From Cycas panzhihuaensis (lineage: Eukaryota; Plantae; Cycadophyta): DNA of 64,000 nt. Below are positions 3,561 to 55,127 of the stretch, in pieces. Numbering within the stretch: position 1 is the stretch's first letter; every line of letters begins with the position of its first letter. Location: the NCBI GenBank assembly GCA_023213395.1, contig CM041465.1, positions 131,447,741 through 131,511,740 of the forward strand. Direction: 5' to 3'. Under the pieces are notes generated by a model that was not told the DNA's origin, searched no databases, and was given only the letters and a program-made list of their open reading frames with translations. The position numbers were made by a program, and so were the translations under genes.

Positions 3561-3626
3561 TAACTTGGTTACCCGAAGTCAATAAATTAATGGTAATATT
3601 CATAAAGTTATAAAAATAGAGATCTC

Positions 3627-10955: not shown

Positions 10956-12015
10956 CTCAAAGATCCTTTCTATTAGACATAATGGGAAGCTACTTTGAAA
11001 AAGTTAATCCACCAATTTCTTTATATATAAATAAATAAAGATTGATTATATTATATATTAATCATTACAACTGGAATCATGAATATAACACTCTTGTATA
11101 TATGATCTTATACTTAGATAGTTATGACACTCTAGTTTTCAATCTCTCATATAATATGTATATTGTATCGAATCATTGTCAAGTCTAGTTTAATTAGGTA
11201 ATGGATCTAAATGTAAATATTAAAAATTATTTTGGTTTAGAATTAGATATTAGAAATGTAGGTGAAAACTCTCAAATGTTAATAGAAGAACAACTTCATG
11301 ATATCAATAAGTTTGATGCCTAAGAAGAAGAAGAACTAAAATAGTTTATGAGAGCACAACAAGAAAAGTCTTGAACGAGAAAGATAGAAGTAAAGAACAA
11401 TCTAGTGATGTTTCAAACATGGTGAAGATTCTTAATAATAAAGAAAAGAAGGAAGATTAATAAACATAGATTTATATACAATAAACATCTTCTGCCATCT
11501 CATGAATAAGTACTTGATGAAGAAGGTAATTATATTTTATACCATGACCTAACCCTACCACTAGATTCCCAAAATGATCCACCTTTAAGCATCAACTCAG
11601 AACCTAAACCTATATCATCGTGAAGCAATAACTCTAATATAAGTAACAGTTCGATGAGACCTTCTACAACTTGTGGTTCATATTCTTCTCCCTCTTTTAG
11701 GTGATTAAAATTATAAAAATATAAAAGTGAGTAGATATTGGATCTTTCTTATCTTTTAGATTTTTGAAAATCTAAGACCTTTATTTTTAATCTTGTATTT
11801 TCTTAGTGATTTCTTTTAAGTCACTCATAAAGTGGTTTCATATCAACATCACTTTATGTTACATTTATAAGAGGGTTAATTTTGAAAAAGTAAATTCTCA
11901 CTTATTCTTATCTCTTATTAAATATAAGATATTAATAAGATCTGAAAAATATAATTTATTATAAAGTAGATAGATACTTCTTGAATCAACATCTTCTACA
12001 ACTTTTGAGAAAGCC

Positions 12016-14354: not shown

Positions 14355-14784
14355 AACATTACAAGCTGATTATAATCTAAACATAATTATGAGCAAGTTG
14401 TAATTAAAGACTATAATCTAAGAGTAAACTAAATGTATTTTTGAATATTAATTGATGTAATGAGCCAACTATTATTAGTTGTTTTTAGTTGTAATTAATA
14501 GTGGTTGAAACCATTGAAATGTTGTAAATAAATAAGGATGGGATAATATGTCTATGTATATGGGATGAGAGGGGTTTAAACATCATTTCGCTAAAGTCTT
14601 ATTATTGTAAGCTTGATTAGCTAGTCAGCTTTCTATGTATCACTAGGTCTGCATTCTGTTGTGAGAAGGTCAAACACAATTCCCTATGTTAATGATATTA
14701 TGTTTTGCATTATGATGGGTGTTTCTTATACTTACCTTATTCATTCGGTTAATGACTTATAGATGAATAAGTGGATGATACACA
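13758..14784 (+). repeat. 5' LTR of element A, containing a degenerate 29-bp tandem array
   Basis: Homologous to 44998-46047. Units such as TTACAAGCTAATTATGGTTCAGGTCATGG repeat over ~13840-14420. Confidence 0.9.
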
Positions 14785-14800: not shown

Positions 14801-16316
14801 ATAAAAGTCGAGTGAATGAAAATGACATAATAAACAAAGATGAATAAACAAATGGGACCACTTCCATACCACCCAAGGTAGAAAAGGAATCACAAAGAGA
14901 ATGCATAGAGTGATAGGATAATGATAGACTCTAGATAGGAGTAAGAAAATAAAGATTTATAATCATGCTAAGGAAGTAAGTGAAGAGGCGACTAGTTGCT
15001 AACTTGATTAGAAGGAGAAAATCAAGTGTGGAAGGTAAAAGGTAAACAGAGGCGAAAATAATTAGAGAGTCTATCAAAGAAAAGACAATATAAGTTAAAG
15101 ATAACTAATGGTATGCATTAGAAGAGGATCCCATTGGAATAGAAGTCTAAGAGAGAAAAAGTAATAAAGACCTTATTGAAGATTTACCATCTCAAGAAGG
15201 TAAAAATAGTTCAATTGAATTAAAATTATATAGTATAATAGAGAGGGAGTGGAACCATCATTGGTTGGAAGTCAAAACCCCTTTAAGTCACATTTTAAAT
15301 CCTTTGTTTAAGTCAACAATGGTAAGTGAGGAGGGAGTGCAGGACGTGAAATCCCATCGTCAAACCAATTGCCTTTTACCAATGCGAGACGAAGTGATAA
15401 TTAACCATTGAATAGAATGGGTCAAAGGAGTAGAGCAGAACTAGTCAAGCCTTGTATTATTATACAAAATGATTCTGTCTTTTCAAGCATACAATTTGAT
15501 GGATCTATAGAGTCATGAGATCATTTAGTATTATTTAAAAACATACTAAAAATAAAGAAAGTCACAAACCCAAAGAAGATAAAAGCTTTATTTTTTTCCC
15601 ACATTACATGACGTAGTAATTATATGGTTCTAGTATATTGCAATATATAACTTATCATGAGAAAGATTATAAGATTAATTTTGGATCAATTCCAAAAATT
15701 GATAGATCCCATGGCCATCTTTCATGCCTTAGAGGAAATAAAGTAATATCTTGGAGAGTCTATAAATGATTTTAATGGTTGAATAAGGATAGTAATAAAC
15801 AAGATGCAACTCATAATGACAATTAACCTGATGTTAGTAATGAAATATTTTATTTGAGGCTTAATCCCACAATTAAAGGATAAAGTTATATTGCACCTAA
15901 TAAATAACTATGAACAAGTATGTGAGTTAGCCATGAAGTTTGAAAATCAAATGAAGACTACGTACTCTCAATAAGTAGTTTAATATATAGGACAACTGGG
16001 TCCAACTTTTCCTCAATCATCATTAGGAGTGTAAACATAAGAAACATATAATCAAACACTCTAGATGGGAACAAATATAGAGATTGAAGCATTGAGAAAA
16101 GAGATGGAAGACTTGAAACAACAATCGTTAGTATTAATACTTGCTAACGTGCACCAAAATTAAGAAATAGAAAAATTACGTGTAGAGTTAGCTAGATTGT
16201 ATCTGAAAAACTCACATGATAATATGTGGTGCCCCCCATCTTGCAATTAGTAAGGTCATTTAAGGAATAAACATGATAAAACATCAATGTAGTATGAATA
16301 TTATAAAAAAACTAAC

Positions 16317-19300
16317 TGGAATCGCATTTATGGGATGGTAACCATATTTGGTTATGATTGGGTTAATCAACAAAGTGTTTCAGAATCTAAGGTCAATCTG
16401 ACAAGTGAGAAAGATCACCCACATAGGGCATCCGTGCGTTAGAATGCAAGTTCAGGACCTACGAATGGTGCACAACTCCCTTTTAGATAACTCAACTTTA
16501 GTTCTAAGGGTAAAAGGAGTGAGGGATATCCTTGGTTTCCTGAGTAACCTCAAGTAGGTCCTCCCACCCTTGGATGGTCGAAGGAGGGAGGTAAGGTCAA
16601 ATGAGGGAATGGCTCCTCGCTGAAGGAAAAGTGTGTAAATGAGGTGTTTTCAAACAAACAATGCAGGAGGTGCACGCTTATGGAAAGGAGATTGGGTAAC
16701 CACCCCACGAGCGGAACCAACCCAAAAGGAAGGGTGCTAAGGCTACCTAGCTACTACAGATATGACAAGATGGGGGGGGAACGACCTAGAGGTAAGGTCT
16801 TCCCTAATCCAACATACCCAAGGTGGGCTTGGGGATGTGAGGTGACAACAAAAAGGGGTTTTCACCATTTTGAGTATAAAGGTTTTGGTGCTCTATGTGT
16901 TGTGGTGAAGTGGTAGATGTATTGTTATGTTTGTTACAAATGGGAGAAAAATATAAACTCATAAATAAGCTCTCATTTACTCTCTAATATAACAACCTCA
17001 CTCTCCTTTCGATTTTTTATGAAAGAAAGAAAAGAAACAGAGAGGTTAGTCAAATATTTACAAACATACATGCAAGGGGTATAAGGCCAAACAAAGGGAC
17101 ATGCAACCAAGTGAGGAAGTAAAAGAATGCGATTCCTACTTCATGCACTTCCCTAGATGAGTAAAGGAATTAAAACACAGGCAAATGATGGATGTAGGAT
17201 TATTTCTTTACTCTTTGTCCTTTTTTATTTCACGTATGCAAGCAAACAAATTTTAAATAAGAGAAATAGAGTTACAAGAAAAGAGGTGGCAGTGCACTTG
17301 GAAGATCGCACGACCAGATGAATATGTTCCCTCATGTTGCACTCGCTTCCCTCTTCCTTTCCCCAAATGTGAGTGGCGTAGAGCGGTGGTGTTGGGGCTT
17401 ACTTACCTTCCCCAAGTAGAAAAGGAAAAAAGTAAGAAAGGAAAAGAGAAATGGATATATAAAAACATTAGAAAGTAATAAGGAAATAAAGGAGAAAGAT
17501 GTACCCAGGATGACATGCTTCTTCCTCCTCCACGCGTGGTGTAGCAAGAACCTACAATCAAAGAGTATTTCCCTTTCCCAAGGGGTTGCTAGGGTACAAG
17601 ATATATATGTATACAAAAGTATATAAACTGATACCAACAAGTATTTTAATCGAGTAAAACTCTTAGTTAAGAGACAATTTCCAACCTTCTCTATGCTAGT
17701 AAGATAAGAAAATGAATGGAGATGGTTAGCCTCGGAATGGATAACCCTCCAAAACACACACCTCCACGTTGTATAAGCACATAAACAATAGGTAATGACA
17801 GAATAATAGAGGCTAAATATATGATCGACGGGCTATAAAAGGGCTACAAATTTTGCTAATATTACAAAAGTCACGATGCACAACTTTTGTAACCCAAGAT
17901 TAATCCAACACCCAAAGGCAAGGTGGGGTATGATTGGGGGTTATAATCTTTGCCTATGTAAGGCTCACAAGGATGGAGCAAGTGTAGTAATGGGCTACAT
18001 ATGCTACTACTAACAATGGCTTCTCTTCTAAGAGCTCTTTGGTAGCCCAAGGGAAGCACATATGAGGGAGAGGAAAAGGGGAGAAGGGGGTTGCCCTTGA
18101 GAAGAAGGCCTTACTAGGTTATGGAACCTACCTTGGCTCCTTTCACTTATCTTTTTGAGACCTCTTCATCGCTGCCTCCTTGGAGAAACCAAGGAAGAGC
18201 AGGAAGGTATGGAGGACAGACAAAGAAAGATGGAGGGGATGCCTCCTTTGCACAATGGAAAACTGGAGAAAAGAGGGGGTATACAGGGTGTTTCTATCAC
18301 TTTTAAGGAACTTAAAAGGAACAAAATGAAATAAGAATGGGGGAATACCTGCTATAGATGAATTAGGAATAGATTTACCTGAGAAAATAGTAGAGAAAGG
18401 TAGTCCTACAGGGTTTGTAGGTGACTATGAAATATGGAGAGATAACCTTGGCAGAGTACAATACTTGTGCTTGGAGGTAAGCCTTGGAGCGTGTCTTACT
18501 TGAAGAGGCCTTATCTTAGGCTTGATGCCATGGATCTGAGCTATAAAGGACTGATCTCATGCTGGAACATAGGTATGTCAGGTATTGTAGGGCGTTTCTA
18601 CAAGAAAGGACCTATGAGAGAGCAAGCAGAGATGATAGAGAAGTGGAAGAAGAGAGTCTAAGAGAGAAAAAATGATGTCTTTATGGGTTTTAAACTTAAC
18701 CCTAGCTCAATTGAGCGATTAGGATTCAACTAGGGCTGGAAATACAAATTAGCCACATGGCAATTTCACAATAAATGCAAAATATTCCATAGCATATTTT
18801 AAAAAATAGTTTATGACAGTTGCCTCGCAGTAAATTTCATGGTACTGCGAAGTCTACCCCAGTACCATGATATTTATCGTGGCGCAGCGATAACATAAAA
18901 GACATAAAGAGCAGAAGGAGATGGGAGCCCTAAAAGAAGGTACTCTAGGCTTAGGAGGGTCTGACCCTCTATCCAAATGGCTAAGGACAATCATGAGGAA
19001 GAAATGACCTACGCTGGATGGAGCACCAAAGAGATAGAGTTCCCAAGGGGTTGGCAAATGGGTAAGAATATACCAATCACACCTAGCAACGTGCTAAAAG
19101 CTATGATGTGTCAATGGGGTTGTGAACAGATCACAAGGGCTCGTTAGTGCTTGGGACAACATGGAGATGCATAGGAGGGTCATGGAGTGCCATTGGGATC
19201 CATGTCCCGAGTCATCATAGGCTAGAATAATGTCAAGCAATATGATCAAGTAGCAGACGTAAGATGATCACTCAAATAAATTAATTAGTCATGTAGTGGA

Positions 19301-19413
19301 AAATAGATGCTTCAATTTACCTTTCTCAAGAATTGACAAAGGTAAAGGATAGAAGCGTACCTACACTTACCTGACTTGACTCACCAAAACCCATTCTCAA
19401 TAGCTAGGAAACA
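16317..19413 (-). repeat. 3' LTR of element B (~3.1 kb)
   Basis: Collinear with 35003-38084. Hand count gives 9 differences in the first 64 nt, mostly transitions. Confidence 0.95.
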
Positions 19414-19929
19414 CTGCTCCCTTGGTAGAAGAGCCTCTCTACTTGGAGGCACAACACGATGGCGAATGTTGGTAACATAATGTTAGTGACATATATATAC
19501 AAACAAACATAACAATGGTATGAGCCAAGGGTGATGATAAGTGTCATGGCAGAATGTGTTGGCGTGGAGGTGAGGGCGAAACAACATAGGGGTTGCCTAT
19601 GTGTCACCCTATAGTCAACTGGCAATGATGATGGATGAGGGAGATGTCCCCATTGTAGGAGTATAAGAAAAAGATGGTGATGACCACACACATGATTAGA
19701 CAGATGTCATGAATAAGGTGTTACATATATAAATAAGTCAAAATAATAGGGATTATGTGCTAAGAGTAGGGTAAAGAGACAAACCTAGTGGTTGCCTTAG
19801 TTTAACCTCATTAGCAGTAGACTTTCAAAGGTGTGAATAGATCGTGATGTGAAGGAAGGGATAACCCGAGACTTGGGTGCCTGAGCAACCAGACAAGTCT
19901 CTCAATGGGGGTCACTAAGTAGAGGGAGG

Positions 19930-20360
19930 CGATGCTCAAGGACGAGATGAACCAGGCTGTCTGCCTCATCGTTGAGAGCCCAAGGAATGTGTTGGATGTC
20001 AATAGAAGGAAAATAAGCCAACAAGGACCTAACGATCAAGGTGAGGGCTCTCAAGCATAGGCAATGCACTTGGTAGACTTGGGTGAGATGGGATACCGCA
20101 ACCTAAGAGTCATAAAAGAGGATGATAGGTCCATGGTGGAAGTAGAGCGCATCAGTAAGGGCCTCAATAACAATTGTGTATTTAGCTTTGTTATTAGTGG
20201 CTTCAATAATAACTGTGTATTCAACTTCATTATTAGTGGCTTTAGGAAGGAAGATCCTAAAATGCATGAAGTCATATCCACAAGGGTCATAGAGAATCCA
20301 TGCGATGGCAGAAGGGCCTAGGCTGCCATGGCTTCTACCATCGGTGAAGACAAGCAACGT
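19930..20360 (-). pseudogene. Archaeal-type RNase HI (aRH) domain, copy 1, stand-alone in the 3' region of B
   Basis: LLVFTDGRSHGSLGPSAIAWILYD...ATNNEVEYTVIIEATNNKAKYTIVIEALTDAL...FYDS...QHIPWALNDEADSL. The D-E-D-D catalytic pattern is present, and TGG is likely a decayed CGG (HIPR.LN..AD). Confidence 0.85.
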
Positions 20361-20933
20361 TATGGTAGAAGGAATGGAGGTCTCGATAGGGTAAATCAAG
20401 GAAAAAGAGTACTAACAGGGTTGATGGGCGAAAAGGACTCAATGAAGGGAAGCAATTATGAGGGACTCAAGCAGCTATCAATAGGGGCTGTGAAGGGTAA
20501 GAGGACCCAAGGGTGAGGTTACCCGAGGACGAGGAAACTGATTTAGCAGACGAGATGGAAACGATAGTGAAAAGACCCCTCCGGGGTCCCAAAGCTCACT
20601 AAAGGAAGCGGGGTGTGATCTTGGATGGGGAGGGCACTTCCTTTGGGAGCCCTAGAGATATGAACGGGTAGCAAAAATGGGTTTAGGATGGTAAAATAAG
20701 CCAAATGAGTATAAACTCGGGTATGTTTGGAGATGGCACAAAAATCAAGACAGAAGGGGCCTCATAAGGCTAAAAGGGGATGCCATAAATGCACCCAAAG
20801 GATAAAAAGAAAAGAGGGCCACAGAGGCAAAATGGGAGATGAACCCAGAAAGCAAAGGTAACCAAGGGAGAGAGATGGTCCCAAGGGCTATCATAGCAAG
20901 AGAAAAGGAGGAGGTGCCCATCAGGGCACTCGC

Positions 20934-20943
20934 CTATATAAGG
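20934..20943. promoter_or_regulatory. Candidate TATA box between the divergent aRH and PMD genes (copy 2 at ~24776-24785)
   Basis: CCTATATAAGG reads TATATA on both strands. A pyrimidine patch lies ~30 nt downstream on the minus strand. Conserved in both cassette copies. Confidence 0.5.
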
Positions 20944-21102
20944 AAAACTCGATGAAAATGGGATTCATTTTCATGGGCTCACAATTGATTCAGAGCCCTT
21001 TTTCTTATGCAGCAGAGCACCACCTAACTTTAGAGGCATGCAGAGTGAGATCATACCATTAGATCAGGATGCGAAGATAGCTAGTAGGACTGGGGAGATG
21101 AG

Positions 21103-23493
21103 ATGGTGGTAGCTAGGTTAGATCTAGTGAGTGGATCACACCTTATCCTATCCATTTCATCATTTGAATGTGATGTGTTTTTAAGTTTTTGTTAGGCAAT
21201 TTTAGGCCTCTTAAGGGAAAACTGGGATCTCCTAGAGCCTGAATTAGGCCTAGAGAGAGGGGGGAGTAGGGCATTATGTAGCCTTAGTCCCGGTAGGCCC
21301 GAGTATAGCCCAACCTGGAAAAAAATTTGGGTTTTTTAGGTGGAAAACCCCCCTTTTTATGGGGATGTGAGTTGGCCCTGTGGCAAAGATTATAGTGCCA
21401 CAAAATTTGTTGCGAGGCTACTATATTTATGCTCAAAACTCAGCGGGGCCCATGCTAAACTCTGGGGTACTACGTAGTTTAATGTAGTACGAAGGTAGAC
21501 CAACTAAAAAGGTAAAGGATGGCTTGAAGGAGTGTGAAACTCAGCTAAGAGGGGGTGAGGGGCACTCCTGAAGGTCGAAAGATAAGTACATGGTTATTCT
21601 GACGAGTTTTTGGGTGTTTAACAGGTGGCTATCACGGCAGACAACCATGAGAACATCGGCGTGGCAATGATGAGCTTTATAGAGATGATGTCTCTTGGGG
21701 ATAGGTAGACACTAGGGAGATGTAGCCTACTGAAGGTGATCAGGACGCCATAGTATGCTTCAGACCAGCGTCTACTGGTTGACATCATCTTGTACTAGTA
21801 TCACATGTGACATGTGTTTTACCTCCCCTATGTAGGGGACATTATCATCACACTAGGAGACATCTAAAGTATCTTGGGAGTACCAGCGACAAGAGAACTA
21901 GCGTCGCTAGGGGTGCTACTTAACAATGATGTTACACACAGGGAGGGTGCCACTTTCTTCACAGGTTAAGACAGGTGGGAGAGGAGAGGGATACCTGTTC
22001 AGAGCATGGTTATATCGTAGATTCCTCAGGTGAGGAAGTTAATCACATTATGCATTTTATTTCAGATATCCCAGAAATAGAACTATAGAGACATTCCCGG
22101 CAGCTGGATGGAGACAGTGAGGAGATGTGAGGCCAGGGAGAGGATACACTAGGCTACTCTGATAGCAACGAACTTGATCACCTGATAGTGACAAATCTAA
22201 TTACCTAGTTAGATGCCATCAGGGTAGGAGGGCCACACCCTATCTTAGCATGGGCTCCTATGGTCCACAGGTGGCAAACTCAGTTTAGGGGGATTGAGGA
22301 TCAGGTGCACGTTTGACACTCAGCGGAGGTGACATCACTGGACCTCCTCAGTATGGCAGATTATACAGAAGACCTATATAGAGGGGTGAGGTGGGATAAT
22401 GATGATGAGGTAGGAGAAGTGAGAGGAGCCAGAGGTGGCCCTAGAGGAGATGATGATGATGGTGGTAATGACGGGGGTGATGGGGCAGGCCTATCAGGAG
22501 CAACAGGTAGCAAGGTAGGTCCATCAGGAGTTACAGGAGGAGAGGTGGGTCCCTCAAGAGATGCATGGAGAGGCAAGCCACCACGAACACTAGTTAAGAG
22601 ACTAAGGATAGTCAGGAGGGCCTGAGCAGTGGTGGCGGCTATAACTAAGGAGGATGGAGGCGACACTCTGGTAGGCCAGGTCGTCGGCGAGGTGGTACTA
22701 GAGGAGGAAGAGGTACTAGTAGTTAGGGGAGGTCCCGAGGAGGAGATGGTTGTTAGAGTCAAGGAGTTGGTAGTCCCAGGAGATGAGACACTACCTTTCC
22801 CTGTCGTCTTTTGATCACTAGGTATCTAGATGCTTTACTTTGATTTGGTTTATTTGGTATACATATATGGATGTGCATACTAACATATGGTGTATTTGGC
22901 TTTGCAGGAGTAGTGGAGATAGGGAGATTGGTTGAGGCGGTAGTCTGGCAGATGTTTCCCTGGGCCTATGCAGAGGGGCAACCTCCCATCTAGGCAGGAG
23001 AGGAGCCATTTTTAGAAGGGGCTCATATAATGGCATTTGCCCCATTGATCAGGGTAAGGGATGTGTGCGTAGCAGAGTCCCAAGAGCACCAAGTGAGAGT
23101 GGGATAGCTATAGGGAGAGTTGGATAGGACTAGAGTAGATAGAGACACCCTACGAGGTCAGGTCCAGGCATTAGAGGCTTAGGGAAGAGCAAGTGGGGAT
23201 GCAGAGAGTCACATCTGAGTGGCAGTACCAGAGAAGCATCTCTGGTGGATGGAGGAGAGGCTCTGAAGGGCAAAGAGTGAGAAAGATCATATCTAGTCAT
23301 GATATGATCAACTGGTAGACCGGATGGCATCAAGGTCATCGCAGAGTAAGACTTATACCCATACGATGGCGATAACCATGAGGAGGCCTTGAGACGAGGG
23401 GAGCGAGGTGGGGAGCTCCTAGACGTGCAGGAGGAGTTTAGGAGGTATGTGGTCCCCTAGGGAGGGATTACATTGACCAAAGGACAGTGTGCC
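21103..23493 (+). pseudogene. Spliced plant mobile domain (PMD, aminotransferase-like) gene antisense to element B, copy 1, 3' end cut by the duplication breakpoint
   Basis: LLKVIRTP.YASDQRLLVDIIL...HVFYLPYVGDIIITLGDI.SILGVP. Introns 21127-21624 (GTGAGT..CTGAC..AACAG) and 22822-22907 (GTATCT..TACTAAC..TTTGCAG). Confidence 0.78.
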
Positions 23494-23774
23494 CCTATCA
23501 TAGGAGTACAAGAGAAGGGTGGTGATGACCACACACAGGATTAGACATATGTCATGCATAAGGTATTACATGCATAAATAAGTCAAAATAGTGGGGATTA
23601 TGTGCTAAGAGTAGGGTAAAGAGACAAACCTGGTGGTTGCCCTAGTTTAACCTCATTAGTGATCAACTTTCAGAGGTGTGAATGGATCATGATGTGAAGG
23701 AAGGGATAAACTAAGACTTGGGTGTCTAGGAAACCAGACAAGTCTCTCAATAGGGGTCACTAAGTAGAGGGAGA

Positions 23775-24202
23775 CGACACTCAAGGACGAGACAAACCAA
23801 GCTATCTACCTTGGAGTTGAGAGCCCAAGGAATGTGTTGGATGTCAACAGAAGGAAAATAAGCCAACAGGGACCTGTCGATCAAGGTGAGGGCTCTCAAG
23901 CGTGGGCAATGCACTTGGTAGGCCTAAGTGAGATGGGATACCACCTGAGAGTCATAGAAGAGGATGATGGGTCCACGGTGGAAGTAGAGCGCATCGGTAA
24001 GGGCCTCAATAACAATTGTATATTTAGCTTCATTATTGGTGGCTTTAATAACAACTATGTATTTAACTTCATTATTGGTGGCTTTGAGAAGGAAGATCTC
24101 AAAATGCATGAAGTTATATCTAGAAGGGTCATAGAGAATCCATGCGGTGGTGGAAAGGCCTGGGTTAGCATGGATTCTACTGTCGATGAAGACGAGTAAC
24201 AT
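23775..24202 (-). pseudogene. aRH domain, copy 2
   Basis: LLVFIDSRIHANPGLSTTAWILYD..ATNNEVKY..ATNNEAKYTIVIEALTDAL..FYDSQVVSHL..HIPWALN. Confidence 0.85.
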
Positions 24203-24944
24203 TATGGTAGAAGGAATGGAGGTCTAGATAGGGCAAATCGAGGAAAAATAATGTTAACAGGGTTGATGGGCGAAAAGGACTCAATGAAGGGAAGCAATCG
24301 TGAGGGACTCAAATGACTATCAATAGGGGCTGTGAAGGGTAAGAGGACCCAAGGGTGAGGCAACCCGAGGACAAGGAAATTGATTTGGTAGACGAGAAGG
24401 AAACGATGGTGAAAAGGCCCCTCCGTGGTCCCAAAGGTCACTAAAGGGAGCGAGGCATTATCCTGGATGGGGAGGGTGCTTCCTTTAGGAGCCCTAGAGA
24501 TATGAACGGGCAGCAAAAATGGTTTCAGGATGGTAAAACAAGCTAAATGAGTATAAACTCAGGTATGTTTAGAGATGGTACAAAAATTGAGAGAGAAGGG
24601 GCCTCGCAAGGCTAAAAGGGGATGCCATAAATGCACCCAGAGGATAAGAAGAAAAGAGGGCTACAAAGGCAAAATGGGAGACAGACCCAGAAAGTGAAGG
24701 TAACCAGGGAAGAGAGATGGTCCCAAGGGCTATCGCAATAAGAGAAAAGGAGGAGGTGCCCATCAGGGCTCCTGCATATATAAGGAAAATGCAGAGAAAA
24801 TGGGATTTATTTTCATGGGCTCACGATCGATTCAGAGCCCTTTTCCTTACGCAACAGAGTGCCACCTAACTTTAGAGGCATGCAGGGGGAGATCAAACCA
24901 TTAGATTAGGACACGAAGATAACCAGTAGGACCAGGAAGACAAG

Positions 24945-27720
24945 ATGGTGGTAGCCGGGCCAGATCAAGTGAGTGGATCACACCTTATCCCATCCATTTC
25001 GTCATTTGAATGTGATGTATTTTTAAGTTTTTGTTAGGCAGTTTTAGGCCCCTTAAGGGCAAACTGGGATCTCTTAGAGCCTGAATTAGGCCTAGACAGA
25101 GGGGGAACCGGGGCATTAGGTAGCGTTGATCCTAGTAGGCTCAAGTATGGCCCAACTTGAAAAAAAAATTGGGTTTTTTGGGTGGAAAGCCCTCCCTTTT
25201 TATGGGGGTGTGAGTTGGCCCCATGACAAAGATCACAGTGCCATAAAATTTGCTACAGGCCTCTGAGCTTATGCTCAAAACTCAGCGGGGCCCATGCTAA
25301 ACTCTGTAGTGCCATATAGTTTAATGCAGTGTGAAGGCAGACCAACTAAAAAGGCAAAGGATGGCCTAAAGGAGTGCCAAACGCAGCCAAGAGGGGGTGA
25401 GAGGCACTCTTGAAGGCCGATGGATAAGTACATGGCTGTTCTAACAAGTTTTTGGGTGTTTGACAGGTGGCTATCGCGATAGACAACCATGAGAACTTCA
25501 ACATGGCAATGATGAGCTTTATAGAGATGATGTCTCATGGGGATATGTAGACACTAGGGAGATGTGGCCTACTAAAGGTGATCAGGATGCCATAGTATGC
25601 TTTAGACCAGTGGCTACTAGTTGACATCATCTTACACTGGTATAACAGGCGACATGTGTTTCACCTCCCCCATATAGGGGATATTATCATCACACCGGGA
25701 GACATCTAGAGGATCCTGGGAGTACCAGTGGCAGGAGAACTAGCATCACTAGGGGTATTACCTAGCAATGATATTACATACAAGGAGGCTACCATCTTCT
25801 TTATAGGCCAAGATAGGTGGGAGAGGAGAGGGATACCTGTTCAGAGCATGGTTATGTCGTAGATTCCTCAAGTAAGGAAGTTAATCACATTATACATTCT
25901 ATTTCAGATATCCTAGAAATAGAACTATAGAGACATTCCCGATGGTTGGATGGAGACGGTGAGGAGATGTGAAGTCAAGGAGAGGATGGACTAGGCCACT
26001 CTGATAGCAACGAACTTGATCACCTAATAGTGACAAACCTGATTACCTAGTTAGATGCCATCAGGGTAGGAGGGCTACACCCTATCTCAGTGTGGGCTCC
26101 TATGGTCCATAGGTGGTAAACTCGATTTAGGGGGATTGAGGATCAGGTGCGCGTTCAACGCTCAGTGGAGGTGACAACACTAGACCTCCTCACTATGGCA
26201 GATTATACGATAGACCCATATAGAGAGGTAAGGTGGGATAATGATGACGAAGCAAGAGAAGTAGGAGGAGCCAGAGGTGGCCCTAGAGGAGATGATGATG
26301 ATGGTGGTGATGACAGGGGTGATGGGGCAGGCCCATTAGGAGCAGCAGGTGGCAAGGTAGGTCCATCAGGAGTTGGAGGAAGAGAGGCAGGTCCCTCAAG
26401 AGCTGCATGGAGAGGCAGGCCACCACAGACACTAGTCAAGAGACTAAGGATAGTTGGCAGGGCCTAAGTAGTGGCAGTGGCTATAGATGAGGAGGATGGA
26501 GGCGATGCTCTGGTAGGCCTGGTCATTGGCAAAGTGGTGTTTGAGGAGGAAGAGGTACTAGTAGTTGGGGGAGGTCCCGAGGAGGAGATGGTCATCGGAG
26601 TCAAGGAGCTGGTAGTCCCAGGAGGTGAGACACTACCTTTCCCTATAATCTTTTGATCATTAAGCATCTAGATGCTTTACTTTTATTTGGTTTATTTGGT
26701 ATACATATATGGATGTACATACTGATATATGGTATATTTGGCTTTGCAGGAGCAGTGGAGATAGGGAGATTGGTTGAGGTGATAGTCTGAGAGATGTTTC
26801 CTTGGGCCTATGCGGAGGGACAACCTCCCATCTAGGCAGGAGAGGAGCCACGTTTGGAAGGGGCTCATACAATGGCATTTGTCCCATTGGTCAGGGCAAG
26901 GGATATGTGCATAGTGGAGTCCTAAGAATACCAAGTGAGAGTGAGATAACTATAGGGAGAGTTGGATAGGACTAGAGCAAATAGAGGCACCCTACGAGGT
27001 CAGGTCCAGGTACTGGAGGCTCAAGGAAGAGCAAGTGGGGATGCAGAGAGTCGCATCTGAGTGGCAATGCTAGAGGAGCATCTCTAGGGGATGGAGGAGA
27101 GGCTCCGAAGGGCAAAGAGTGAGAAATATCATATCTAGGCACGATATAATCAACTAGTAGACTGGATGGCATCAAGATCATTGTAGAGTAAGACCCATAC
27201 CCATATGATGGTGACGACCCCGAGGAGGCCTCGAGACGAGGGGAGCGAGGTGGGGAGCTCCCAGAGGTATAGGAGACGTTTAGGAGGTATATGGTCCCCT
27301 AGGGAGGGATTGCATCGATCAGAGGATGGTGTGCCATGAGTAGAGGACCACTAGAGAGTAGGATATGCTGGTTTTGATTTGGGAAAGCACCGGACCTCTA
27401 GGGAGTTACCATATATTACTACATGATTGTACTCCTCCCTACAAGGACTCTGGATTCCTGCAAGTGATGTACCATACCATTTGTATGATATGACACATTA
27501 TGATTTTTATGTATATAGGTAGGGCCATTGGTTCCCTATTTGATATATGATGGTGTGTGGTGATACATGATGATATATTGTGTTGAATTTATTTTTCTAT
27601 AGATGTTTGTGTATACACATATATGAGGGTATACAAGAGCAGGAGAAGCCATAGATCATGATGATTTGAGTTGATTATTATATCATTTATGTTATAGGAT
27701 TGTTTGAGTTGCACACACTT
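24945..27720 (+). pseudogene. Spliced antisense PMD gene, copy 2, with a T-rich 3' UTR-like tail
   Basis: MVVAGPDQ|VAIAIDNHENF..LGRCGLLKVIRMP..DQWLLVDIILHWYNRRHVFHLPHIGDIIITPGDI*RILGVPVAGE matches the PMD motif W....H.FHLP.G...IT..D...ILG.P..G. Donor AA|GTGAGT at 24969 joins in frame to acceptor TTTGACAG at ~25466. Confidence 0.8.
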
Positions 27721-28115: not shown

Positions 28116-31100
28116 TCATGCATAAAATTTCCTTAGGAATTTCCCATTAACAACCTTCTCAAATTCGAGACCTTTTAAGGTTGCAATCCTGTAAGCGTCG
28201 TTATCGAGACTCTTGAGGAGAACAAAGGGGCCAACCCATTTAGGTCTGAATTTAGATAAGTGGTCATGGAGATATTCCAACTTGAGGATGTGGTCCCCAG
28301 GATGTAAAGGGCAGGAACAAAGGCGCTTGTCATATATCCTTCGTGCCCTGGCCTTAGAAGCGAGATTCGCTTGGTAAGCGATCAAGCACCTCTCATCTAA
28401 GACCTTGAGGTCTAAGAGACAAGCCTAGCGGAGAGACTCCTCATCGATATGACCACGAAGAGAGACTTGTAAAGAGGGAATCTCCACTTCCAATGGGAGA
28501 ACTTCCTATGTTTCGTATACTAGGGAAAAAATGGTCATTCTTATAGTTGTACAGATAGATGTGCAATATGCCCATAGAGCGAAAGGGAGCCAGAGATGCT
28601 AATCTTTTTGAGATCATGCTATGATTTTCTTTAAAATATTTATAAGGATTTTGTTAAATGATTTAGCTTGGCCATTGGCCTGGGGGTAATACGGAGATGA
28701 GGTTTTGTGAGAAATTTTGAATTTCTCACAGAGTTCGTCTATCTCCTTATTACAGAAAGGAGTTCCATTATTTATAATCAGAATGTTGAGGACTCCAAAA
28801 CAACAGATGATGTGCTAGTAGATAAAGGTGGCTATCATCTTAACAGGAGTAGAAGTCAAAGGGACTACTTCAGCCTATTTAGTAAAGTACTCCATAGTAG
28901 TCAAGATAAATTTATGCTGTGACGAAGAAGGTGGGGATATGGCTCTAATAAGGTCCAACCCCTATTCGGAGAAGGGCCATGGAGATATGACAGGATGGAG
29001 GGCCTTAGAAGTCAAGTGGGTGATGTTAGTATGCTCCTGGCACCACTGACATCTCAAGACATAGGCATAGGCATCCTTAAAGAGGGACAACTAGTAATAC
29101 CCCATACGAAGGATCTTTTGGGCCATGGATTGGCCTCCAAAGTGCCCCCTGTAAATGCCATTATAACATTCATGGAGTATTTGGTCCATTTCGTTGGGGT
29201 TGAAGTAGCGAATAAGGATCCCATTAAAGGATCTCTTATATAATACTTCAGCCATAAGGAAGTATTGCCTAGTAGTAGCTTGAATACACAACTTAACTTT
29301 ATTGCTGGCTTTGGGGCGATACTGCTACTAGGTGAGGTATTGTACAATGTCTCCATACCACTCACTATGAGTGAGTGGATGAGGAGGAGAATCCTAAATG
29401 GCCAAAATGGGCTTGTTAAGTAAGGAATCATCGACGAGAATGTTGAAAGGGTTCAAGATGGGGGTGCTGACGAGTTTCTCAGCCACGACCATCCCTTTTT
29501 TAACTTCCTACTAACGATTTGTAGGTTAAATTCTTGAAGGAGGACAACCCACTTGCTAGTCCTACCTGTCAGGTCAAGTCAGTTAAGTAAATATCTTAAG
29601 GGATTAGATTGGACGATTAGCTGAGTAGTATTCCTGAGCAAGTAGTGCCTAAGCTTCTTAGTGGAGTGCACAAAGGAGAGACACTCCTTCTCGACAGGAG
29701 AGTAATTAAGTTCAGTAGCCATGAGGGTGCAACAGATGAAGTAAATGGCCCTTTCAGTTCCCGAATTATCCTCCTAAGCTAGCATAGCATCTAAGGACTC
29801 ATCGGTAGCTGAAGTGTAAAGAATGAATGGTTTGTCAAAGAGAGGAGGCACCAGTGTCAGGGCAGAAGTGAGGGCTTCCTTGAGTTCTTCAAAGGCTTGT
29901 TGGGCCTTTGAAGACCAAATGAATGGGGCTCCTTTCTTTAATAGGTTGGTAAGGGGTTTGGCATTTATGGCAAAATTTACCAAGAAATGCCGAAGAAAAC
30001 CAAGCATATCTAAGAACAACTTGATCTGTCATTGGGTTTTAGGAAACAACATGTCAAGGATGGCCTTGACTTTGTCAGGTTCAATTTGGATTCTTTATTT
30101 TGAGATAAGGAAACTAAGGAGTTTTCCATCCATTACAACAAACACAAATTTGAGAGGGTTGAGGCTTACATGGTATTTGCGACATCGTGTGAAGATGGCT
30201 CATAAATCGAAAGGATGGTGGGCCCTAATGCATGAGAAACCTATCATATCGTCCATGAAAACCTCTAAGGATTTGTTAATAAGGTCATGAATAATGAATT
30301 GCATCGACCTTTGATAGGTGGCACCTATATTCTTTAGCCCAAAGGGCATCACCTTATAGGTGAAGGTGCCCCATGGGGTAGTGAAGGCCACCTTATGATA
30401 GTCTTTGAGGGAAATCTAGATTTGGATGTAGCCTGAGACGTCGTCCATTAAGGACATGACTTTAAATCTAGCAGTTTGATCAATGATTTGATCAATGAAG
30501 GGAAGTGGGAAGTTGTTCTTAGGACATGCATTGTTGATGTCTCAGAAATCAAGACATATCCTAATTATCCCATTCTTTTTGGCAATAAGGACAATATTGG
30601 ACACCTACTTGGGGTAGTTGATAGAAGTGATTAACCCTGCATTTAAGAGTTTTTCAACTTCCATCTTGACAGCAGCTAAAAGATTGGGATGAAGAGGACG
30701 CTATTTTTGACGCATAGGGTGAGCACTTAGAATGGTGGTAAGATTGTGGGTAGCAATCGAAGGGTCTATTCCCTTCATATCAAAGTAATCCCATGCAAAG
30801 ACATCTTAGAATTTCTGGAATAGAAGTGTGTACTCCTTCATTTCATCAGGAGAGCATTTTGGTCCCACCTTAATGACCTTACCTAGGGAAAGGACTATGT
30901 CCTTAGTTGCCCCCATGCACATAGCATTACCTTCCTCGAAGTGAAGGGGGGATCGGTCAATAGGAAGGGGTGGAATAGGAGATGGATTTGGGTCAACAAG
31001 AGAAGACCCAATAGCTAAGACCTTCTAGTGACCAAGCCTATGATTACCAGAAGGGAGATTGGGCATGGAGCCTATTAGATGCTTGAGCAAAGCCTCATCA

Positions 31101-34100
31101 TCCTCAAAGTAGTCCACCCCATGGATGACCACACCTCGAGAAGATGATGAGAGAGGGGGAGAAGAAGAGTTGGAACCGTGGCGGTCGACATACCACTCGA
31201 CATGCCCACTGGAAGAGTCGAAAAGAGTTCTCCTATGAGGAATAATAGGAGGCTCCCTGACTTCGTTGCCTATAGGGGGCGATAAAGAGGGAGACACAAT
31301 AATAGCTTGATCAACAGGAGCGATAACATAAGATCCAAGGGAAGAGCTAGTTTCTCCAATAATGGGGGTTTTAGGTCAGGACCTAAAACGAAGGAAGTGC
31401 CCGCTAGCCATACTTAGAAGAGAGATGGCATGAAGGAAGACCTCATCCTTACCATTAGACTCATTATCGTTAAGCATGGCGAGATACCTATAGATCTTAA
31501 CACCAATAGGGGTGAAGTGTATGAGGTTGGAAGAAGAAGACGAAGGGCCTTGTTCCAAAGGGGATAGATCAGGGATGTCAATGGAATATGTGAAAGCATG
31601 GGCAGAAAGGTCCTTGTCACCCTTTACTTGACTATGAACCACTTGACATGGTTGATGAGGTTGTTTAGAGGGAGGAGGCTCCCTGGAGACAACTCTCATT
31701 TGCCCCTCATGGACAAACTTAAGTTGTCTCCAATGGGACGAGTACGCAGCTCCCATTTGGTCGAGCTATAGGCATCCCAACAAAGGGTTGTAGTTGACAT
31801 CGATGCCAAGAACTACAATGTCAGTGAGGATAGTCTTATCTATAAGAGTAAAATAGATGGACATTGATCCCAAGGGTGTCTTTTCGCTACCATCGTAGCC
31901 TTAACACTACCATGGAACCAGCTCCAGGGTAGGTATGCTAAGCTCTTGCATGACACATAAGGGCATGGTATTAATGGAAGAATCATTATCAACAATAATT
32001 CTTCGTAAAGTACAGTTGAGAGTATCAATGGTTATGGTGAAGGGGAAATGCCATTGGTATTCCCTTTCACCGGCAGGGGGAAGATCCTTAAGGTCAAAAG
32101 AGATGATGGGTTCACAACTTGGGATGACACCCAAGGCATGAACAAATGCGTCACCTAATCTTAAGGTCTAGGAGAAGTATATGCTGTTCAGAGTAGCTCC
32201 TCAAGACATCCATTATGGACATCCCGACAACCACGGTGTGGAGCTCATCGACAGTGGAGAAGGGCTTCCCCTTCATGGTAGGTTGGGGAAGAGTTCTTCA
32301 AAAGTTGTAGTAACCAGGGTGCACGGGAATGGTCTTAGGGAGTGTAGGGACTTTCAGAAGAGGGTCAAGGTGAGGTGTGGATAAAGAGGTGCTATTCATC
32401 TCTTTAGCTACTTGAGACTTAGTTAGGGCATACAATGGTGTGGTTTCAAGCATCTGGATGACCTTCTTTCCCTTGTTTTGAGATCAAGAAGGTGAAGGAG
32501 TATGATGGTTGGGAGAAACAGAGGAAGATGATGAATTCCTTACACCCTTCCCTTTAGCTTACGAAGGATAAGGGTTTGGGGATCTTCCTCTATTTTGACT
32601 ATTCTTTTATTGGTTGTTGTGATCATGTTCCATGTGTTTGGGAAAGTGATCTCTATGGACAGGCTAGTCTAAGTTAGGCCTAAATGACTGTTTGGGGAAA
32701 GTATCACGTTACGGGTAACTTTAGAGTGCTTGGCCCAGCAATATGAATCTTCGTGGAAACATTCGTTGTGGATGGAATACCACTTCTTCTTGAGGGAGGA
32801 ATTAGGCTTCCTTGCTTGAGAAGACTAGGTGTTACCACCCTTGGGGGGAGTGGTTTGAGTAGCTTGGTAGACTAGTTTATGTAAGGTAGGAGATGAAGGA
32901 GCCTAGAGTTTGAACTCCTTCATGGTATGTTCGAATTAACATATGGCAGAAGTGAGAGGATCCAAGGTCTTCTCGGTCGGATGGGATGAAGACCTAGCGG
33001 ATTGCTGGATTTTCATCTCTTGGGGTGGTGGAGGTATCTCATGTCATTGCGAGGGCTTTAGAGGCTTCTTGAGTCTGGCTTGGATCTCAATGGCCTTAAG
33101 CGCCAAGCACTTGGCTATGGTAGAGTCACACGTAGTTGCCCCTATTTTAAGAACTTCGATGTGGGCTTCTTGGTGAAGAGCATTGACAAAGAGATCCCTC
33201 TTCAACTCCTCAAGCAGAGTTACCTTCGTAGAATGAAGAAGGTTGTGAAAGTGTCTTATGAAGTCACGATTCATCTCATCGTGACCTTGTTTGAGAGACA
33301 AGAGGGCTTTCATTCCACTCTCGAACGGACGCGCTATATCAAAATAGTTGACAAATTCATCCATGAGCTATTGGAATGAAAAGATGGAATGTGCTGGCAG
33401 GCGATATAACCACTTGAGGGCATCACCTTAAAGGGATTGTGGGAAGAGTTTTATAAGAATGTGTTCATAGGCCCAGTAATCAATACATACTATAGAAAAG
33501 CTACATACATGGTCTATTGGGTCCTGTGATGAAGTCCCATCAAATTTGGGAACCTTAGGAGGGTGAGGTGATAAGTTGGTTCTTAGTGCCTCGATGGACA
33601 GGGGTGTTGATCTATAGTCCATAAAGGGGCGCACCCTTGACTGGACCATAGGGTCAACGAAAGCTGGAAGAGGAGGTGGGCAAGATTGCCCGAATCCTCC
33701 TTGGAGGGTTTGGTTCAAAAGGGGATGTTATCCTCCCATCATTTGGTGAGAGGATACAAATCCCACATTCGAAGGGACATGCATAGGAGTGGATGGGTGT
33801 GATGGACCCATTCCTCCTTGAGGAAATGCTCCTTGTTGGAAAGGAGCTTGAGATAAAGTGTCTTGGGAGGGAGCTTACTCTCCTTGCAAAGGCACAACAT
33901 GAGGTGCAATGTAGGATGATGGAAAAGAGGGGTGAGGGACCAAGTTTTACCCATATGGGTTGCCCATAGGTGGTGCGACCCCATATGGGTGTAAAGGGTC
34001 TACTCCAAAAGTCAGAAGGGAGTTTCCCTTATCGTGCCCCCATGGTCGAGAGGTGTAATCAAGAAGCACATAAAGGGAAGGATCCCTAGGCTAGAGTTAG

Positions 34101-35002: not shown

Positions 35003-38000
35003 TGGAATCACATCTATGGAATGGTAACCATACTTGGTTAGGACTAGGTTAATCAATGAAGTGTTTCAGAATCTAAGGTCAATCTGGCAAGTGAGAGAGA
35101 TCACCTGCATAGGGCATCCGCATGTCGGAACGCAGGTTCAGGACCCATGAATGGTACAAAACTCCCTTATGGATAACTTGGCTTTGGTTCTGAGGGTAGA
35201 AGGAGTAAGGGATATTCTCGATTTCTAGAGTAACCTCAAGAAGTAGGTCCTCTCACCCTTAGATGGCCAAAGGAGAGAGGTAAGGTGAAATGAGGGAATT
35301 GCTCCTCGTTGAAGGAAAAGGGTGTGAATAAGGTGTATTTAAACAAACAATGAGGGAGGTGCACACTTGTGGAAAGGAGATTGGGTAACCACCCCACGAG
35401 AGGAACCAACCCAAAAGGAAGGGTGCTAAGGCTACCTAGCTATTACAGATATGACAAGATAGGGGGGAAATGACCTAGAGGTAAGGTCTTCCCTAATCCA
35501 ACATACCCAAGGCGGGCTTAGGGATGTGAGGTGACAGCAAAAAGGGGTTTTTACCGTTTTGAGTATAAAGGGTTCAGTACTTTCTATGTTGTGGGGAAGT
35601 GGTAGATGTGTTGTTATGTTTGTTGCAAATGGGAGAAAAACATAAACTAATAAATAAGCTCTCATTTACTCTCTAATATAATAACCTCACTCTCCTTTTA
35701 ATTTTTATGAAAGAAAGAAAAGAAACAAAGAGGCTAGCCAAACATTTACAAACATGCATGCAAGGGATGTAAGGCCAAACAGAGGGACATGCAACCAAGT
35801 GAGGAAGCAAAAGAATATGATTCCTACTTCATGCACTTCCCTAGATGAGTAAATGAATCAAAACACAAGCAAATGATAGATGCAGGCTTATTTCTTTGCG
35901 CTTTTTCCTTTTTATTCTACATATGCAAGTAAAAAAATTTTAAATAAGAGAAAGAAAGCTACAAGAAAAGAGGTGGCAGTGCACCTAGAAGATCATACAG
36001 CCGGATGAATATGTTCCCTCATGTTGCACTCGCTTCTCTCCTTTTTTCCCTAAATACGAGTGGCGTAGAGCGGTGGTGTTGAGGCTCCATTACCTTCCCT
36101 AAGTTGAAAAGGAAAAAAGCAAGAAAGGAAAAGAGAAATAGATATGAAAAAACATTAGAAAGTGATAAGGAAATAAAGGAGAAAGACATACCTGGGATGA
36201 CGTGCTTCTTCCTTCTCCATGCACAGTGTAGCAAGAACTTACAATCAAAGAGTATTTCCCTTTCCTAAGGGGCTGCTAGGGTACAAGATATATATGAATA
36301 CAAAAGTGTATAAAATGATACCAGCAAATATGCTAATCAAGTAAAACTTCTAGTTAAGAGACAATTTCCAACCTTCTTTATGCTAGCAAGATAAGAAAAT
36401 GGATGGAGATGGTTAGCCTCAAAATGGCTAATCCTCCAAAACACATACCTCCACGCTATCCAAGCATATAAACAACAAGTAATGACAAAATAATGGGGGT
36501 AAAATATATGAGCAACATTTTGCAAAAATATTGCAAATGTTGCTAATATTGCAAAAGTCATGATGCACAACTTTTGCAACCCAAGATTAATCCAACACCT
36601 GAAGGCAAGGTGGGGTATGATTGGGGGCTGCAATTCCTACCTATATAAGGCTCACAAGGCTAGAGCAAGTGCAGTAATGGGTTGCGTACACTACTACCAG
36701 TGGTGGCCTCTCTTCTAAGAGCTATTTGGTAGCCCAAGGGAAGCACAAAGGAGGGAGAGGAAAAGGGGGCTGCCCTTGAGGAGAAGGCCTTATTGGGTTG
36801 TAGAACTTGCCTTGGCTCCTTTCTCTCACCCTTTTAGGACCTCTCCCTTGCTGCCTCCTTGGAGAAACCAGGGAAGAGCAGGAAGGTATGGAGGACAGAT
36901 AAGGAAAGATGGAGGGAATGCTTCCTTTGCACAATGGAAAACTAGAGAAAGAGGGGGTATACAAGGTGTTTCTATCACTTTTAAGGAACTTAAAAGGAAC
37001 AAAACAAAATAACAATGGGGGAATATTTGCTGTAGATGAATTAGGAACATATCTGCTTGAGAAAATGGCTGAGAAAGGTAGTCCTTTAGGGTTTGTAGGT
37101 GACTATGAAATCTAGAGAGATAACCTTGGTGGAGTACAATACTTGTGCTTAGAGGTGAGCCTTGGAGTATGTCTTGCTTGAAGAGGCCTTATCTTAGGCT
37201 TTTTGTCATGGATTTGAGCTGCAGAGGACTGATCTTAGGCTGGAACATATGTATGTTAGGTGTTGCAGGGCGTTTCTGTAGGAGAGGACCTATCAGAGAA
37301 CAAGAAGAGATGATAGAGAAGTAGAAGAAGAGAGTCCAAGAGAGAAAAAATGATGTCTTTTTGGGTTTTAAACTTAACCCTAGTTCAATTGAGCATTAGG
37401 GTTCAACTAGGGCTGAGAATATAACTCAACCACATGGTCATTTTGTAATAAATATGAAAATTTCCATGGAAAATTAAAAAAATGGTTTATGATAGTTGCC
37501 TCACGATAAACTTTGTGGTACCGCGAAGTCTACCTAGTACCGCGATATTTATCATGGTGTGGTGACAACATAAAAGACACAAAGAGCAAAAGGAGCTGGG
37601 AGCCCTAAAAGAAGGTACTCTAGGCTTAGGAGGGCTTGACCCTCTATCTAGATGGCTGGGGACAATCATAATGAAGAAATGACCTACGCCGGATGGAGCG
37701 CCAAAGATATAGAGTTCCCAAGGGGTTAGCAAATGGGTAAGAATATACCAATCATGCTTAGCAAGGTGTTAAAAGCTATGATGTGGTAATGGGGTTGTAA
37801 ATAGATCATAAGGGCTAATCAGTGCTTGGGACAACATGGAGATGCATAGGAGGATTGTGGAGTGCCATTGGGATCCATGTCCCGAGTCGTCATAGGCTAG
37901 AATAATGTCAACCAATATGATTAAGCACTAGATGCAAGATGATCGCTCAAATGAATCAATCAGTCATGCATTGGAAAATAGATGCTTCGATTTACCTTTC

Positions 38001-38084
38001 TTAAGAAGTGACAAAGGCAAAAGATAAAGGGGTACCTACACTTGAGTTGACTCACTAAAACCCATTTCTAATAGTTGGGAAACA
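35003..38084 (-). repeat. 5' LTR of element B
   Basis: Copy of 16317-19413, adjacent to the PBS. Confidence 0.95.
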
Positions 38085-38089
38085 CTAAC

Positions 38090-54387: not shown

Positions 54388-54513
54388 TTTCCCCTTACAT
54401 TTCGAGCAAATCGTATTACGTGATAATGACAGCTTCTTCGAAGTCCTATTGTTCAAGTCCTCCAATGATACTTTCAATGGATGAACAATATCCTCATCTC
54501 TCCTTTGCGTTCG
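54388..54513 (-). pseudogene. Captured fragment of a cytosolic class-A DnaJ (AtJ2/AtJ3-like) gene in the copia leader
   Basis: RTQRRDEDIVHPLKVSLEDLNNRTSKKLSLSRNTICSKCKGK versus the plant J2/J3 pattern RRQRRGEDVVHPLKVSLEDLY.GT.KKLSLSRN..CSKC.GK. Confidence 0.9.
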
Positions 54514-54748
54514 AATCTACAAATGTGATCTACAGCATAGGGCAGATGCAGAGGTGGCACTCCACGTAGAGAAACAAGCTCCATGCAACGATCTAGATGG
54601 AGGAGGCTTTAATGATCTGGAGAATAGAGGCTTATGATCTAACATGCAGAGCCTTATGACATTCAAGAGAATGGGGAGGAACAGAGGTTTACCGACCCCA
54701 AACCATGGTAAAACCCCCAACAATAAGCAGAGACCCTCATCTCATGCT

Positions 54749-55033: not shown

Positions 55034-55052
55034 TACATTGCTTTTCACAAGA

Positions 55053-55127
55053 TCTAGACTCGAGCTTTCTATGACAAAAGAACGTCATGAATATGTGGTG
55101 GTTCCTATCTTGTGTTTTATATTGGTC
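55053..55127 (+). pseudogene. Second, more downstream KUP/HAK fragment
   Basis: [25 protein letters not shown] versus KUP2-type SGLEL.MSKEHHQYAVIPITCFILV. Confidence 0.85.

Follow-up and report, generated by a model that had tools for sequence, protein, structure and literature searches.

A doubled unit of archaeal-type RNase H and antisense gene remnants in a probable Tat-clade retrotransposon of Cycas panzhihuaensis

Biryukov and Ustyantsev (2023, PMC10508981) acknowledge that it is still an open question how a retroelement makes use of an RNase H encoded outside its pol gene. The question is raised again by a stretch of 64,000 nt from Cycas panzhihuaensis (GenBank assembly GCA_023213395.1, contig CM041465.1, positions 131,447,741 to 131,511,740 of the forward strand), which is called the window here and whose coordinates are used throughout. 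Between the pol gene and the 3′ long terminal repeat (LTR) of a retrotransposon in this window lie remnants of a gene for an archaeal-type RNase H (aRH) and of an antisense extra open reading frame (eORF). An initial annotation, made from the sequence alone, had described them as one cassette at 19648-27720 in a Tat/Ogre element, composed of a stand-alone aRH gene and an antisense, supposedly spliced gene for a plant mobile domain (PMD) protein. The pair was interpreted as an accessory module that is transcribed in both directions independently of the LTRs.

Our analysis points to a more familiar object. The element is probably an old, dead, full-length copy of a Tat-clade Ty3/gypsy retrotransposon with the published post-integrase layout. 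A detached aRH accompanied by an antisense PMD-type ORF is already catalogued for this clade (Ustyantsev et al. 2015, PMC4408406; Neumann et al. 2019, PMC6317226; PMC10508981; Prokopeva et al. 2026, PMC13468544), which the initial annotation itself had named as grounds for refuting its reading, and the interpretation as a new module is not supported. The only new detail, and one of modest interest, is the tandem doubling of the two-gene unit. Neither the order pol, antisense ORF, aRH nor a block duplication of the pair was found stated in the publications consulted.

The element and its doubled unit

Comparison of the window with itself yields two long pairs of direct repeats, which are the LTRs of the element and two units of 3.85 kb within it. 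The element lies on the minus strand and occupies 21.8 kb, with both ends complete and all genes broken. Its LTRs are 86.7% identical over 3102 bp when aligned by blastn (16317-19415 versus 35003-38086). The target site is duplicated over 5 bp, reading GTTAG in minus-strand orientation, at 38085-38089 and 16312-16316, and a purine-rich stretch stands before the 3′ LTR. Two LTRs of the TG..CA type, a target-site duplication, and the domain order protease (PR), reverse transcriptase (RT), RNase H (RH) and integrase (INT) are all found, as is characteristic of Ty3/gypsy elements.

The RT, native RH, INT and SH3 domains of pol were called by Pfam on the stop-free minus-strand pieces between the LTRs (Table 1). 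As had been proposed, pol ends at 28116, where a stop codon follows the SH3 domain of the integrase, and pol contains no aRH. The native RH and the INT are separated by about 130 nt, which leaves no room for such a domain, and searches of pol with a hidden Markov model (HMM) of aRH relatives and with bona fide RNase HI proteins were both negative. The native RH pieces do match RT_RNaseH, and the decay of this copy blurs the distinction between an ancestral loss of the catalytic core and later damage. The first gag piece follows the 5′ LTR after only about 190 nt. In element sense, pol is followed by 0.8 kb, by the antisense ORF and the aRH, by the antisense ORF and the aRH once more, and then by 0.23 kb leading to the 3′ LTR.

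What had been read as a single cassette is two tandem copies of one 3.85-kb unit that together span 19645-27335, each carrying an antisense eORF and an aRH. The two TATA coordinates given for the supposed single cassette mark the same site in each unit. When aligned by blastn (19645-23493 versus 23490-27335), the units are 87.35% identical over 3850 bp. The Kimura two-parameter (K2P) distance between them is 0.1418 ± 0.0069, against 0.1432 ± 0.0077 between the LTRs, and their alignment contains only 9 gap columns. The near equality of these distances suggests that the unit was doubled at about the time the element inserted, and that both halves then drifted without constraint. Identity between the units is flat, at 0.83-0.90 per 250 bp, and transitions outnumber transversions about sixfold. 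The unit thus appears to have been duplicated in tandem around the time of insertion, and both units would since have decayed neutrally through transitions of the C-to-T type. Conifer-type substitution rates are roughly 2.2e-9 per site per year. At such a rate the LTR distance gives a rough insertion age of some tens of millions of years.

No similarity extends past the left boundary of the units, where the local alignment score falls below the mean for shuffled sequence, and the junction between the units has an overlap of at most 4 bp. Flanking direct repeats were considered as the cause of the duplication and rejected, because none were found at the unit boundary. Given these boundaries, the unduplicated ancestor would have carried its antisense ORF between pol and the aRH.

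The two units can be treated as independent samples of one ancestor, and a stop codon common to both was accordingly taken as most likely ancestral. This comparison underlies much of what is said below about the state of each reading frame before the doubling.

The cassette is far from private to this locus. Logan contigs from four DNA runs bearing three species labels were compared with 21400-27390, and each run contributed 38,000-42,000 short contigs at 85% likeness or more. Counts of this size across the runs imply that the cassette belongs to a very abundant family common to related species. Among the positions at which the majority of contigs disagree with the window, the window carries A against their G at 80-92 places and T against their C at 55-72, compared with 38-44 and 25-31 places for the respective reverse changes. 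This bias of about twofold toward A and T is the signature of decay by deamination in the window copy. Many joints seemed to skip about 3.85 kb, but their interpretation as deletions was rejected because the contigs fit both units. Separately, one contig of 173 nt from run X2 crosses the unit junction (23451-23623) with 16 differences. It hints that the doubled cassette is present in other copies of the family, and as a single record it is a lead only.

The two gene remnants and their expression

Neither aRH remnant is open today, and each carries private stops (Table 1). A complete aRH domain had been reported about 4 kb downstream of pol. The whole fold is indeed represented and detached from pol, the nearest remnant starting about 3.9 kb past the pol stop, but there are two such domains rather than one. 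In copy 1, Pfam reports RNase_H at 1e-4 (22.8 bits against a cut-off of 25.8) and RVT_3 at 0.08, both under their cut-offs. The best relatives among solved structures are the RNase HI of Halobacterium (PDB 4e19; 1e-4) and a metagenomic RNase H1 (3u3g). Stronger matches came from three bona fide RVT_3 proteins (P0012, P0017 and P0020, with Pfam RVT_3 values down to 9e-26), which were compared by phmmer with six-frame pieces of the window. The two aRH sites were the only places found apart from weak matches at 1950-2711. The N-terminal aRH pieces scored 2e-14 to 4e-7 and the C-terminal pieces 5e-4 and 0.08; for copy 1 the values were 2e-14 to 3e-12. Aligned to the RVT_3 proteins, these pieces jointly account for the complete fold, and the TDG, NNxAEY, DSQ and ADxL motifs stand at their expected positions. 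The identity of the aRH is supported by the match to 4e19, by this coverage of the fold, and by a recognisable DEDD set of residues.

The weak matches at 1950-2711, on the plus strand, are RNase H-like and have E values of 0.016-0.33 against bona fide RNase HI proteins. They sit just ahead of 2881-12015, which was previously labelled as an endogenous pararetrovirus.

No stop within the 169-codon aRH segment is common to both copies, and shared stops stand at both of its borders, the upstream one 22 codons before the aRH fold. Such a pattern indicates a reading frame that was open, short, and cut off from sequences upstream. The aRH would therefore have formed an ORF of its own or, at the most, an exon of its own. 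Three related protein fragments encoded on other contigs (P0001, P0002 and P0004; 56-67% identical) share a Met in the same column just before the first strand, and the residues of P0002 that precede it are unlike the window sequence. The conserved Met is consistent with a start codon placed where the domain begins, an arrangement also found in archaeal RNase HI. This column reads ATA in both units of the window, and the Arg of the ‘PR’ motif is replaced by Trp in both.

Both remnants additionally contain an in-frame tandem duplication of 39 bp (20150-20230 and 23990-24070, minus strand). As a result, 13 residues surrounding the motif of the catalytic Glu are present twice (ATNNEVEY.. / ATNNKAKY..), whereas P0001, P0002, P0004 and P0009 have them once. 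The ATA in place of a start codon, the Trp for Arg, and the 13-residue duplication are common to both units, so they either predate the doubling or are traits of a subfamily. A metagenome scan with the aRH alignment recovered prokaryote-like contigs (such as L003), and also a 1.1-kb contig (L001; Ga0099852_1010974, 524-736) that holds a plant-type aRH fragment 42% identical to the window aRH and close to P0009. This last contig is presumably plant DNA in an environmental sample.

The antisense remnant is on the plus strand, where translation of 25596-25859 gives the motif W..xHxFHLP.GDxxITxxDI and, one codon later, ILGVPV.GE, and a second conserved block lies at about 26040-26250. In copy 1 the tail, which extends to 22811, is rich in Gly and Asp and in Glu and Val. 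Two protein fragments from other contigs match this translation (P0058, 106 aa, E 2.8e-20, 52% identity; P0059, 110 aa, 54%), which indicates that the plus strand is coding in relatives. These two fragments were returned by a homologous-protein search with the C-terminal block. In the same kind of search a 50-aa piece returned nothing and P0058 only itself, blanks that mean little given a length window that excluded full-length eORF proteins. The stretch 25596-25859 resembles the N-terminal PMD signature, a motif-level lead that Pfam did not confirm.

At least six in-frame stops are shared along the path of the eORF (21865, 22018, 22086, 22128, 22206 and 22623 in copy 1 coordinates), and P0059 continues without interruption across a site that is a stop in both units. 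The stop at 21865/25707 fills a residue position inside the conserved motif and thus reflects a nonsense change, not an intron. By the time of the doubling, the antisense gene carried here had probably been inactivated. The 5′ end of the eORF faces that of the aRH across a spacer of 1.3 kb. The head-to-head arrangement that had been described therefore stands as far as a conserved antisense ORF remnant is concerned, but the antisense gene was not found to be a PMD gene by Pfam.

In active relatives, translation of the aRH would begin at an AUG of its own, right where the RNase H fold starts, and yield a protein of about 150 aa. This protein would supply the catalytic RNase H activity that a presumably degenerate native RH has lost. 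Its mRNA could be a sub-genomic sense transcript from the LTR promoter, or could be initiated internally. An antisense gene with its 5′ end toward the 3′ LTR requires, on general grounds, a separate promoter. This promoter would fire against the sense of the element, and the simplest location for it is the 1.3-kb spacer, which also faces the aRH. The aRH lies on the genomic RNA in any case, and a sub-genomic sense RNA could serve it equally well.

A single TATATA box between the two genes, at 20934 and 24776, had been described and read as a promoter for both. A TATATAA is present within one base of these positions, but each unit also has a TATAAA 225 bp away (20710 and 24552). Across the 7.7 kb of both units the pattern TATA[AT]A is found 7 times, twice per spacer, and in the whole window 164 times, which is about chance level. 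Retention of TATATAA in both units is uninformative, because about 87% of the whole unit is retained. No RNA run was found to contain the stretch, which leaves divergent transcription neither favoured nor disfavoured. It is against this background that the function first proposed for the locus must be judged. It holds that the two genes form an LTR-independent module, transcribed in both directions from one TATA promoter, that supplies RNase H in trans along with a PMD protein of chromatin type, its possible roles being the removal of R-loops or counter-silencing. The head-to-head remnants, with their spacer and the TATATAA of both copies, accord with such a module, as do the need of the antisense gene for a promoter other than the 5′ LTR and the Met of its own that the aRH conserves in related fragments. 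What an aRH in a separate ORF does is, moreover, described as an open question (PMC10508981). However, the TATA frequency and the lack of RNA runs speak against it, conservation between the copies is uniform and neutral and hence silent on function, and the PMD is unconfirmed by Pfam. No data point touches R-loops or silencing, and both genes had been damaged before the doubling, as the shared antisense stops and the ATA at the start of the aRH attest. With both genes of this copy dead, the locus lends the module no support, and we consider it unlikely. No likelier is a broader idea, in which the solo aRH and antisense eORF would form one divergent unit with an internal promoter, and its tandem duplication (eORF-aRH-eORF-aRH) would, once the outer genes were lost, provide a route to two gene orders.

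Two further explanations were weighed. The aRH might be part of Pol after all, with a sense intron that holds the entire antisense gene being spliced out and the INT joined to the aRH, in the manner of the Ogre intron between gag-pro and pol. The aRNH of lineage III has been placed at the extreme C-terminus of a putative Pol, Ogre offers a precedent for splicing within the Tat clade (both PMC4408406), and earlier reports conflict on whether the aRH is a part of pol or a separate ORF (PMC13468544). On the other hand, the pol stop comes right behind the SH3 domain, a shared stop lies ahead of the aRH fold, three relatives have a Met at the start of the fold with dissimilar residues before it, and the 2023 survey scores a separate ORF (PMC10508981). 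These observations make a spliced Pol-aRH protein a rather improbable product of this element. Still less weight falls on the cassette being foreign, whether as a nested insertion or as a host gene captured privately by one copy, with the pairing an accident. Its coding strand does differ from that of the rest of the element, and it sits in a long spacer between pol and LTR, where nested insertions are common. Against this, both genes belong to one duplicated unit whose age equals that of the LTRs, both parts are matched by contigs in the tens of thousands from runs with three species labels, related protein fragments exist for both genes, and the pairing has been published for the lineage (PMC4408406). 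A foreign origin is thus very improbable, and nested insertion in particular was rejected on the grounds of unit age, family-wide matches and the published pairing.

The reading of this copy as a Tat-clade element of post-integrase layout, which we favour, has its own difficulties, and several observations weigh against it. Membership of the Tat clade rests on the aRH and the layout, and the 2015 description of the lineage draws the aRNH at the C-terminus of Pol, which is before the antisense eORF and not after it (PMC4408406). Pfam searches up to E 10 gave no match to any family, and so none to the PMD family (PF10536) at its gathering score, in 12 stop-free plus-strand pieces of both units or in P0058 and P0059; as the pieces were short (30-115 aa) and decayed, the result weakens the PMD claim without overturning it. 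The PDB gave no solved-structure match for the eORF, and the ESM Atlas returned scores of 0.81-0.84 to unrelated families, which were taken as noise. Finally, the route of expression outlined above is purely one that we infer.

Feature coordinates and the rest of the window

Table 1. Coordinates of the element, its pol domains and its two units in the window
Feature	Position	Strand	Remarks
Cassette copy 1, LTR-proximal	19645..23489		Self-comparison
Cassette copy 2, pol-proximal	23490..27335		Self-comparison
aRH remnant, copy 1	19905..20411	-	169 codons; one private in-frame stop (20103); DEDD recognisable
aRH remnant, copy 2	23750..24253	-	Two private in-frame stops; in-frame 3-bp deletion; catalytic Glu reads Lys
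Antisense eORF remnant, copy 1	21754..22811	+	PMD-like N motif 21754-22017; conserved C-terminal block 22209-22400
Antisense eORF remnant, copy 2	25596..26653	+	Matched by P0058, P0059
TATATAA	20935..20941 (copy 1), 24777-24783 (copy 2)	+	Between aRH and antisense eORF
3′ LTR	16317..19413	-	Minus-strand read TGTTTCC start, GATTCCA end
5′ LTR	35003..38084	-	TGTTTCC start, GATTCCA end on minus strand
Pol remnant	28119..32167	-	Stop at 28116-28118, directly after SH3
Protease region	about 32167-31700	-	Part of pol remnant
Reverse transcriptase	30415-30203	-	Pfam RVT_1 1.7e-7
Native RH	30028-29582	-	Pfam RT_RNaseH 7.7e-14, RT_RNaseH_2 3e-10
Integrase	29452-28617	-	Core rve at 28814-28617, 2.7e-4
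Tf2-type SH3	28424-28119	-	Pfam SH3_Tf2-1 1.5e-3

Several other features of the window lie outside the element. GC skew is positive in 31 of 32 bins of 2 kb across positions 1-64000, the cumulative value rising from 0.13 to 5.99. The plus strand is thus G-rich over the whole window, beyond the element, and this property spans several different repeats as well as AT-rich background.

The stretch 12016-14378 holds a unit of about 1168 bp twice in tandem, the copies being 97-99% identical. A 29-bp periodic array at 44904-45641, about 31 kb away, is related to this unit (60-74%; families D1-D3). An additional pair of direct repeats, D5, is found at 48464-48763 and 55226-55525, where the two members are 90% identical and 6762 bp apart. 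They are probably the LTRs of another element, perhaps of the Copia element previously annotated at 54170-55213.

Comparison with known systems

Among host proteins, the antisense remnant invites comparison with Arabidopsis MAIN/MAIL1 (PF10536). The likeness is at the level of a motif, confined to 25596-25859 and without an HMM match. The stretch from the N- to the C-terminal motif is much shorter here than in canonical PMD, and it belongs to a remnant and not to a host gene.

The aRH resembles archaeal type 1 RNases H, represented by RNase HI of Halobacterium NRC-1 (PDB 4e19) and by the Sulfolobus tokodaii type. It has the same fold and the TDG, NNxAEY, DSQ and ADxL motifs, a length of about 140-150 aa, and a beginning right at the first strand. 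In contrast to these enzymes, it is borne by a retroelement, has Trp for the Arg of ‘PR’, and carries the 13-aa duplication near the catalytic Glu.

Within the Tat clade, the Ogre label that had been attached to the element does not fit. In Ogre and Retand, which are angiosperm lineages, the aRH is located between the native RH and the INT inside pol, whereas in the TatIII elements of gymnosperms it follows the INT (PMC6317226). The window copy does not have the former arrangement. Ogre is also distinguished by a sense eORF upstream of gag and by a pol intron, neither of which is seen here, the former in keeping with the short gap between 5′ LTR and gag. The antisense ORFs of Retand mostly carry Transposase_28, which is not seen here either. 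Tandem repeats that expand the region between pol and LTR are common in the related Retand lineage (PMC11963269).

Tat lineage III of gymnosperms was defined by an aRNH downstream of integrase, and its members have an antisense PMD eORF at the 3′ end (PMC4408406). A later survey described a structure #3, in which the aRH is in a separate ORF, from conifers, Cycas and Ginkgo (PMC10508981), and the most recent study speaks of a ‘post-integrase’ structure with a ‘solo aRH’ ORF (PMC13468544). We equate lineage III with TatIII of REXdb and with the post-integrase structure #3, corresponding to clusters Tat H/I (PMC4408406; PMC6317226; PMC10508981; PMC13468544). Structure #3 accounts for about 20% of Tat elements in Pinales, fewer than 4% in Ginkgo, and 68% in C. 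panzhihuaensis (PMC10508981). A genome so rich in post-integrase elements would be a good place to learn how an RNase H encoded outside pol is used, by means of young copies and RNA data. The copy described here, with about 14% LTR divergence and all of its genes broken, is itself unsuited to this purpose. What it does reveal is that both genes can be duplicated together, as one block, and this illustrates how the 3′ region may grow and, possibly, how gene order may change.

The window copy departs from the 2015 account of lineage III in having its antisense ORF between pol and the aRH, where that text implies an aRNH right after the INT (PMC4408406). It also differs from lineage III, TatIII and structure #3 alike in the doubling of the two-gene unit, in a putative PMD without an HMM match, and in being dead. 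In its other features the copy agrees with them. Two remnants of an archaeal-type RNase H are present in addition to the native RH, as expected of a Tat element, and they are situated downstream of the integrase and outside pol, as expected of the post-integrase structure. Like its published counterparts, the copy is a Ty3/gypsy element whose archaeal-type RNase H follows the integrase as a separate ORF, with an antisense extra ORF in the 3′ region, no 5′ extra ORF, and a long region between pol and the LTR.

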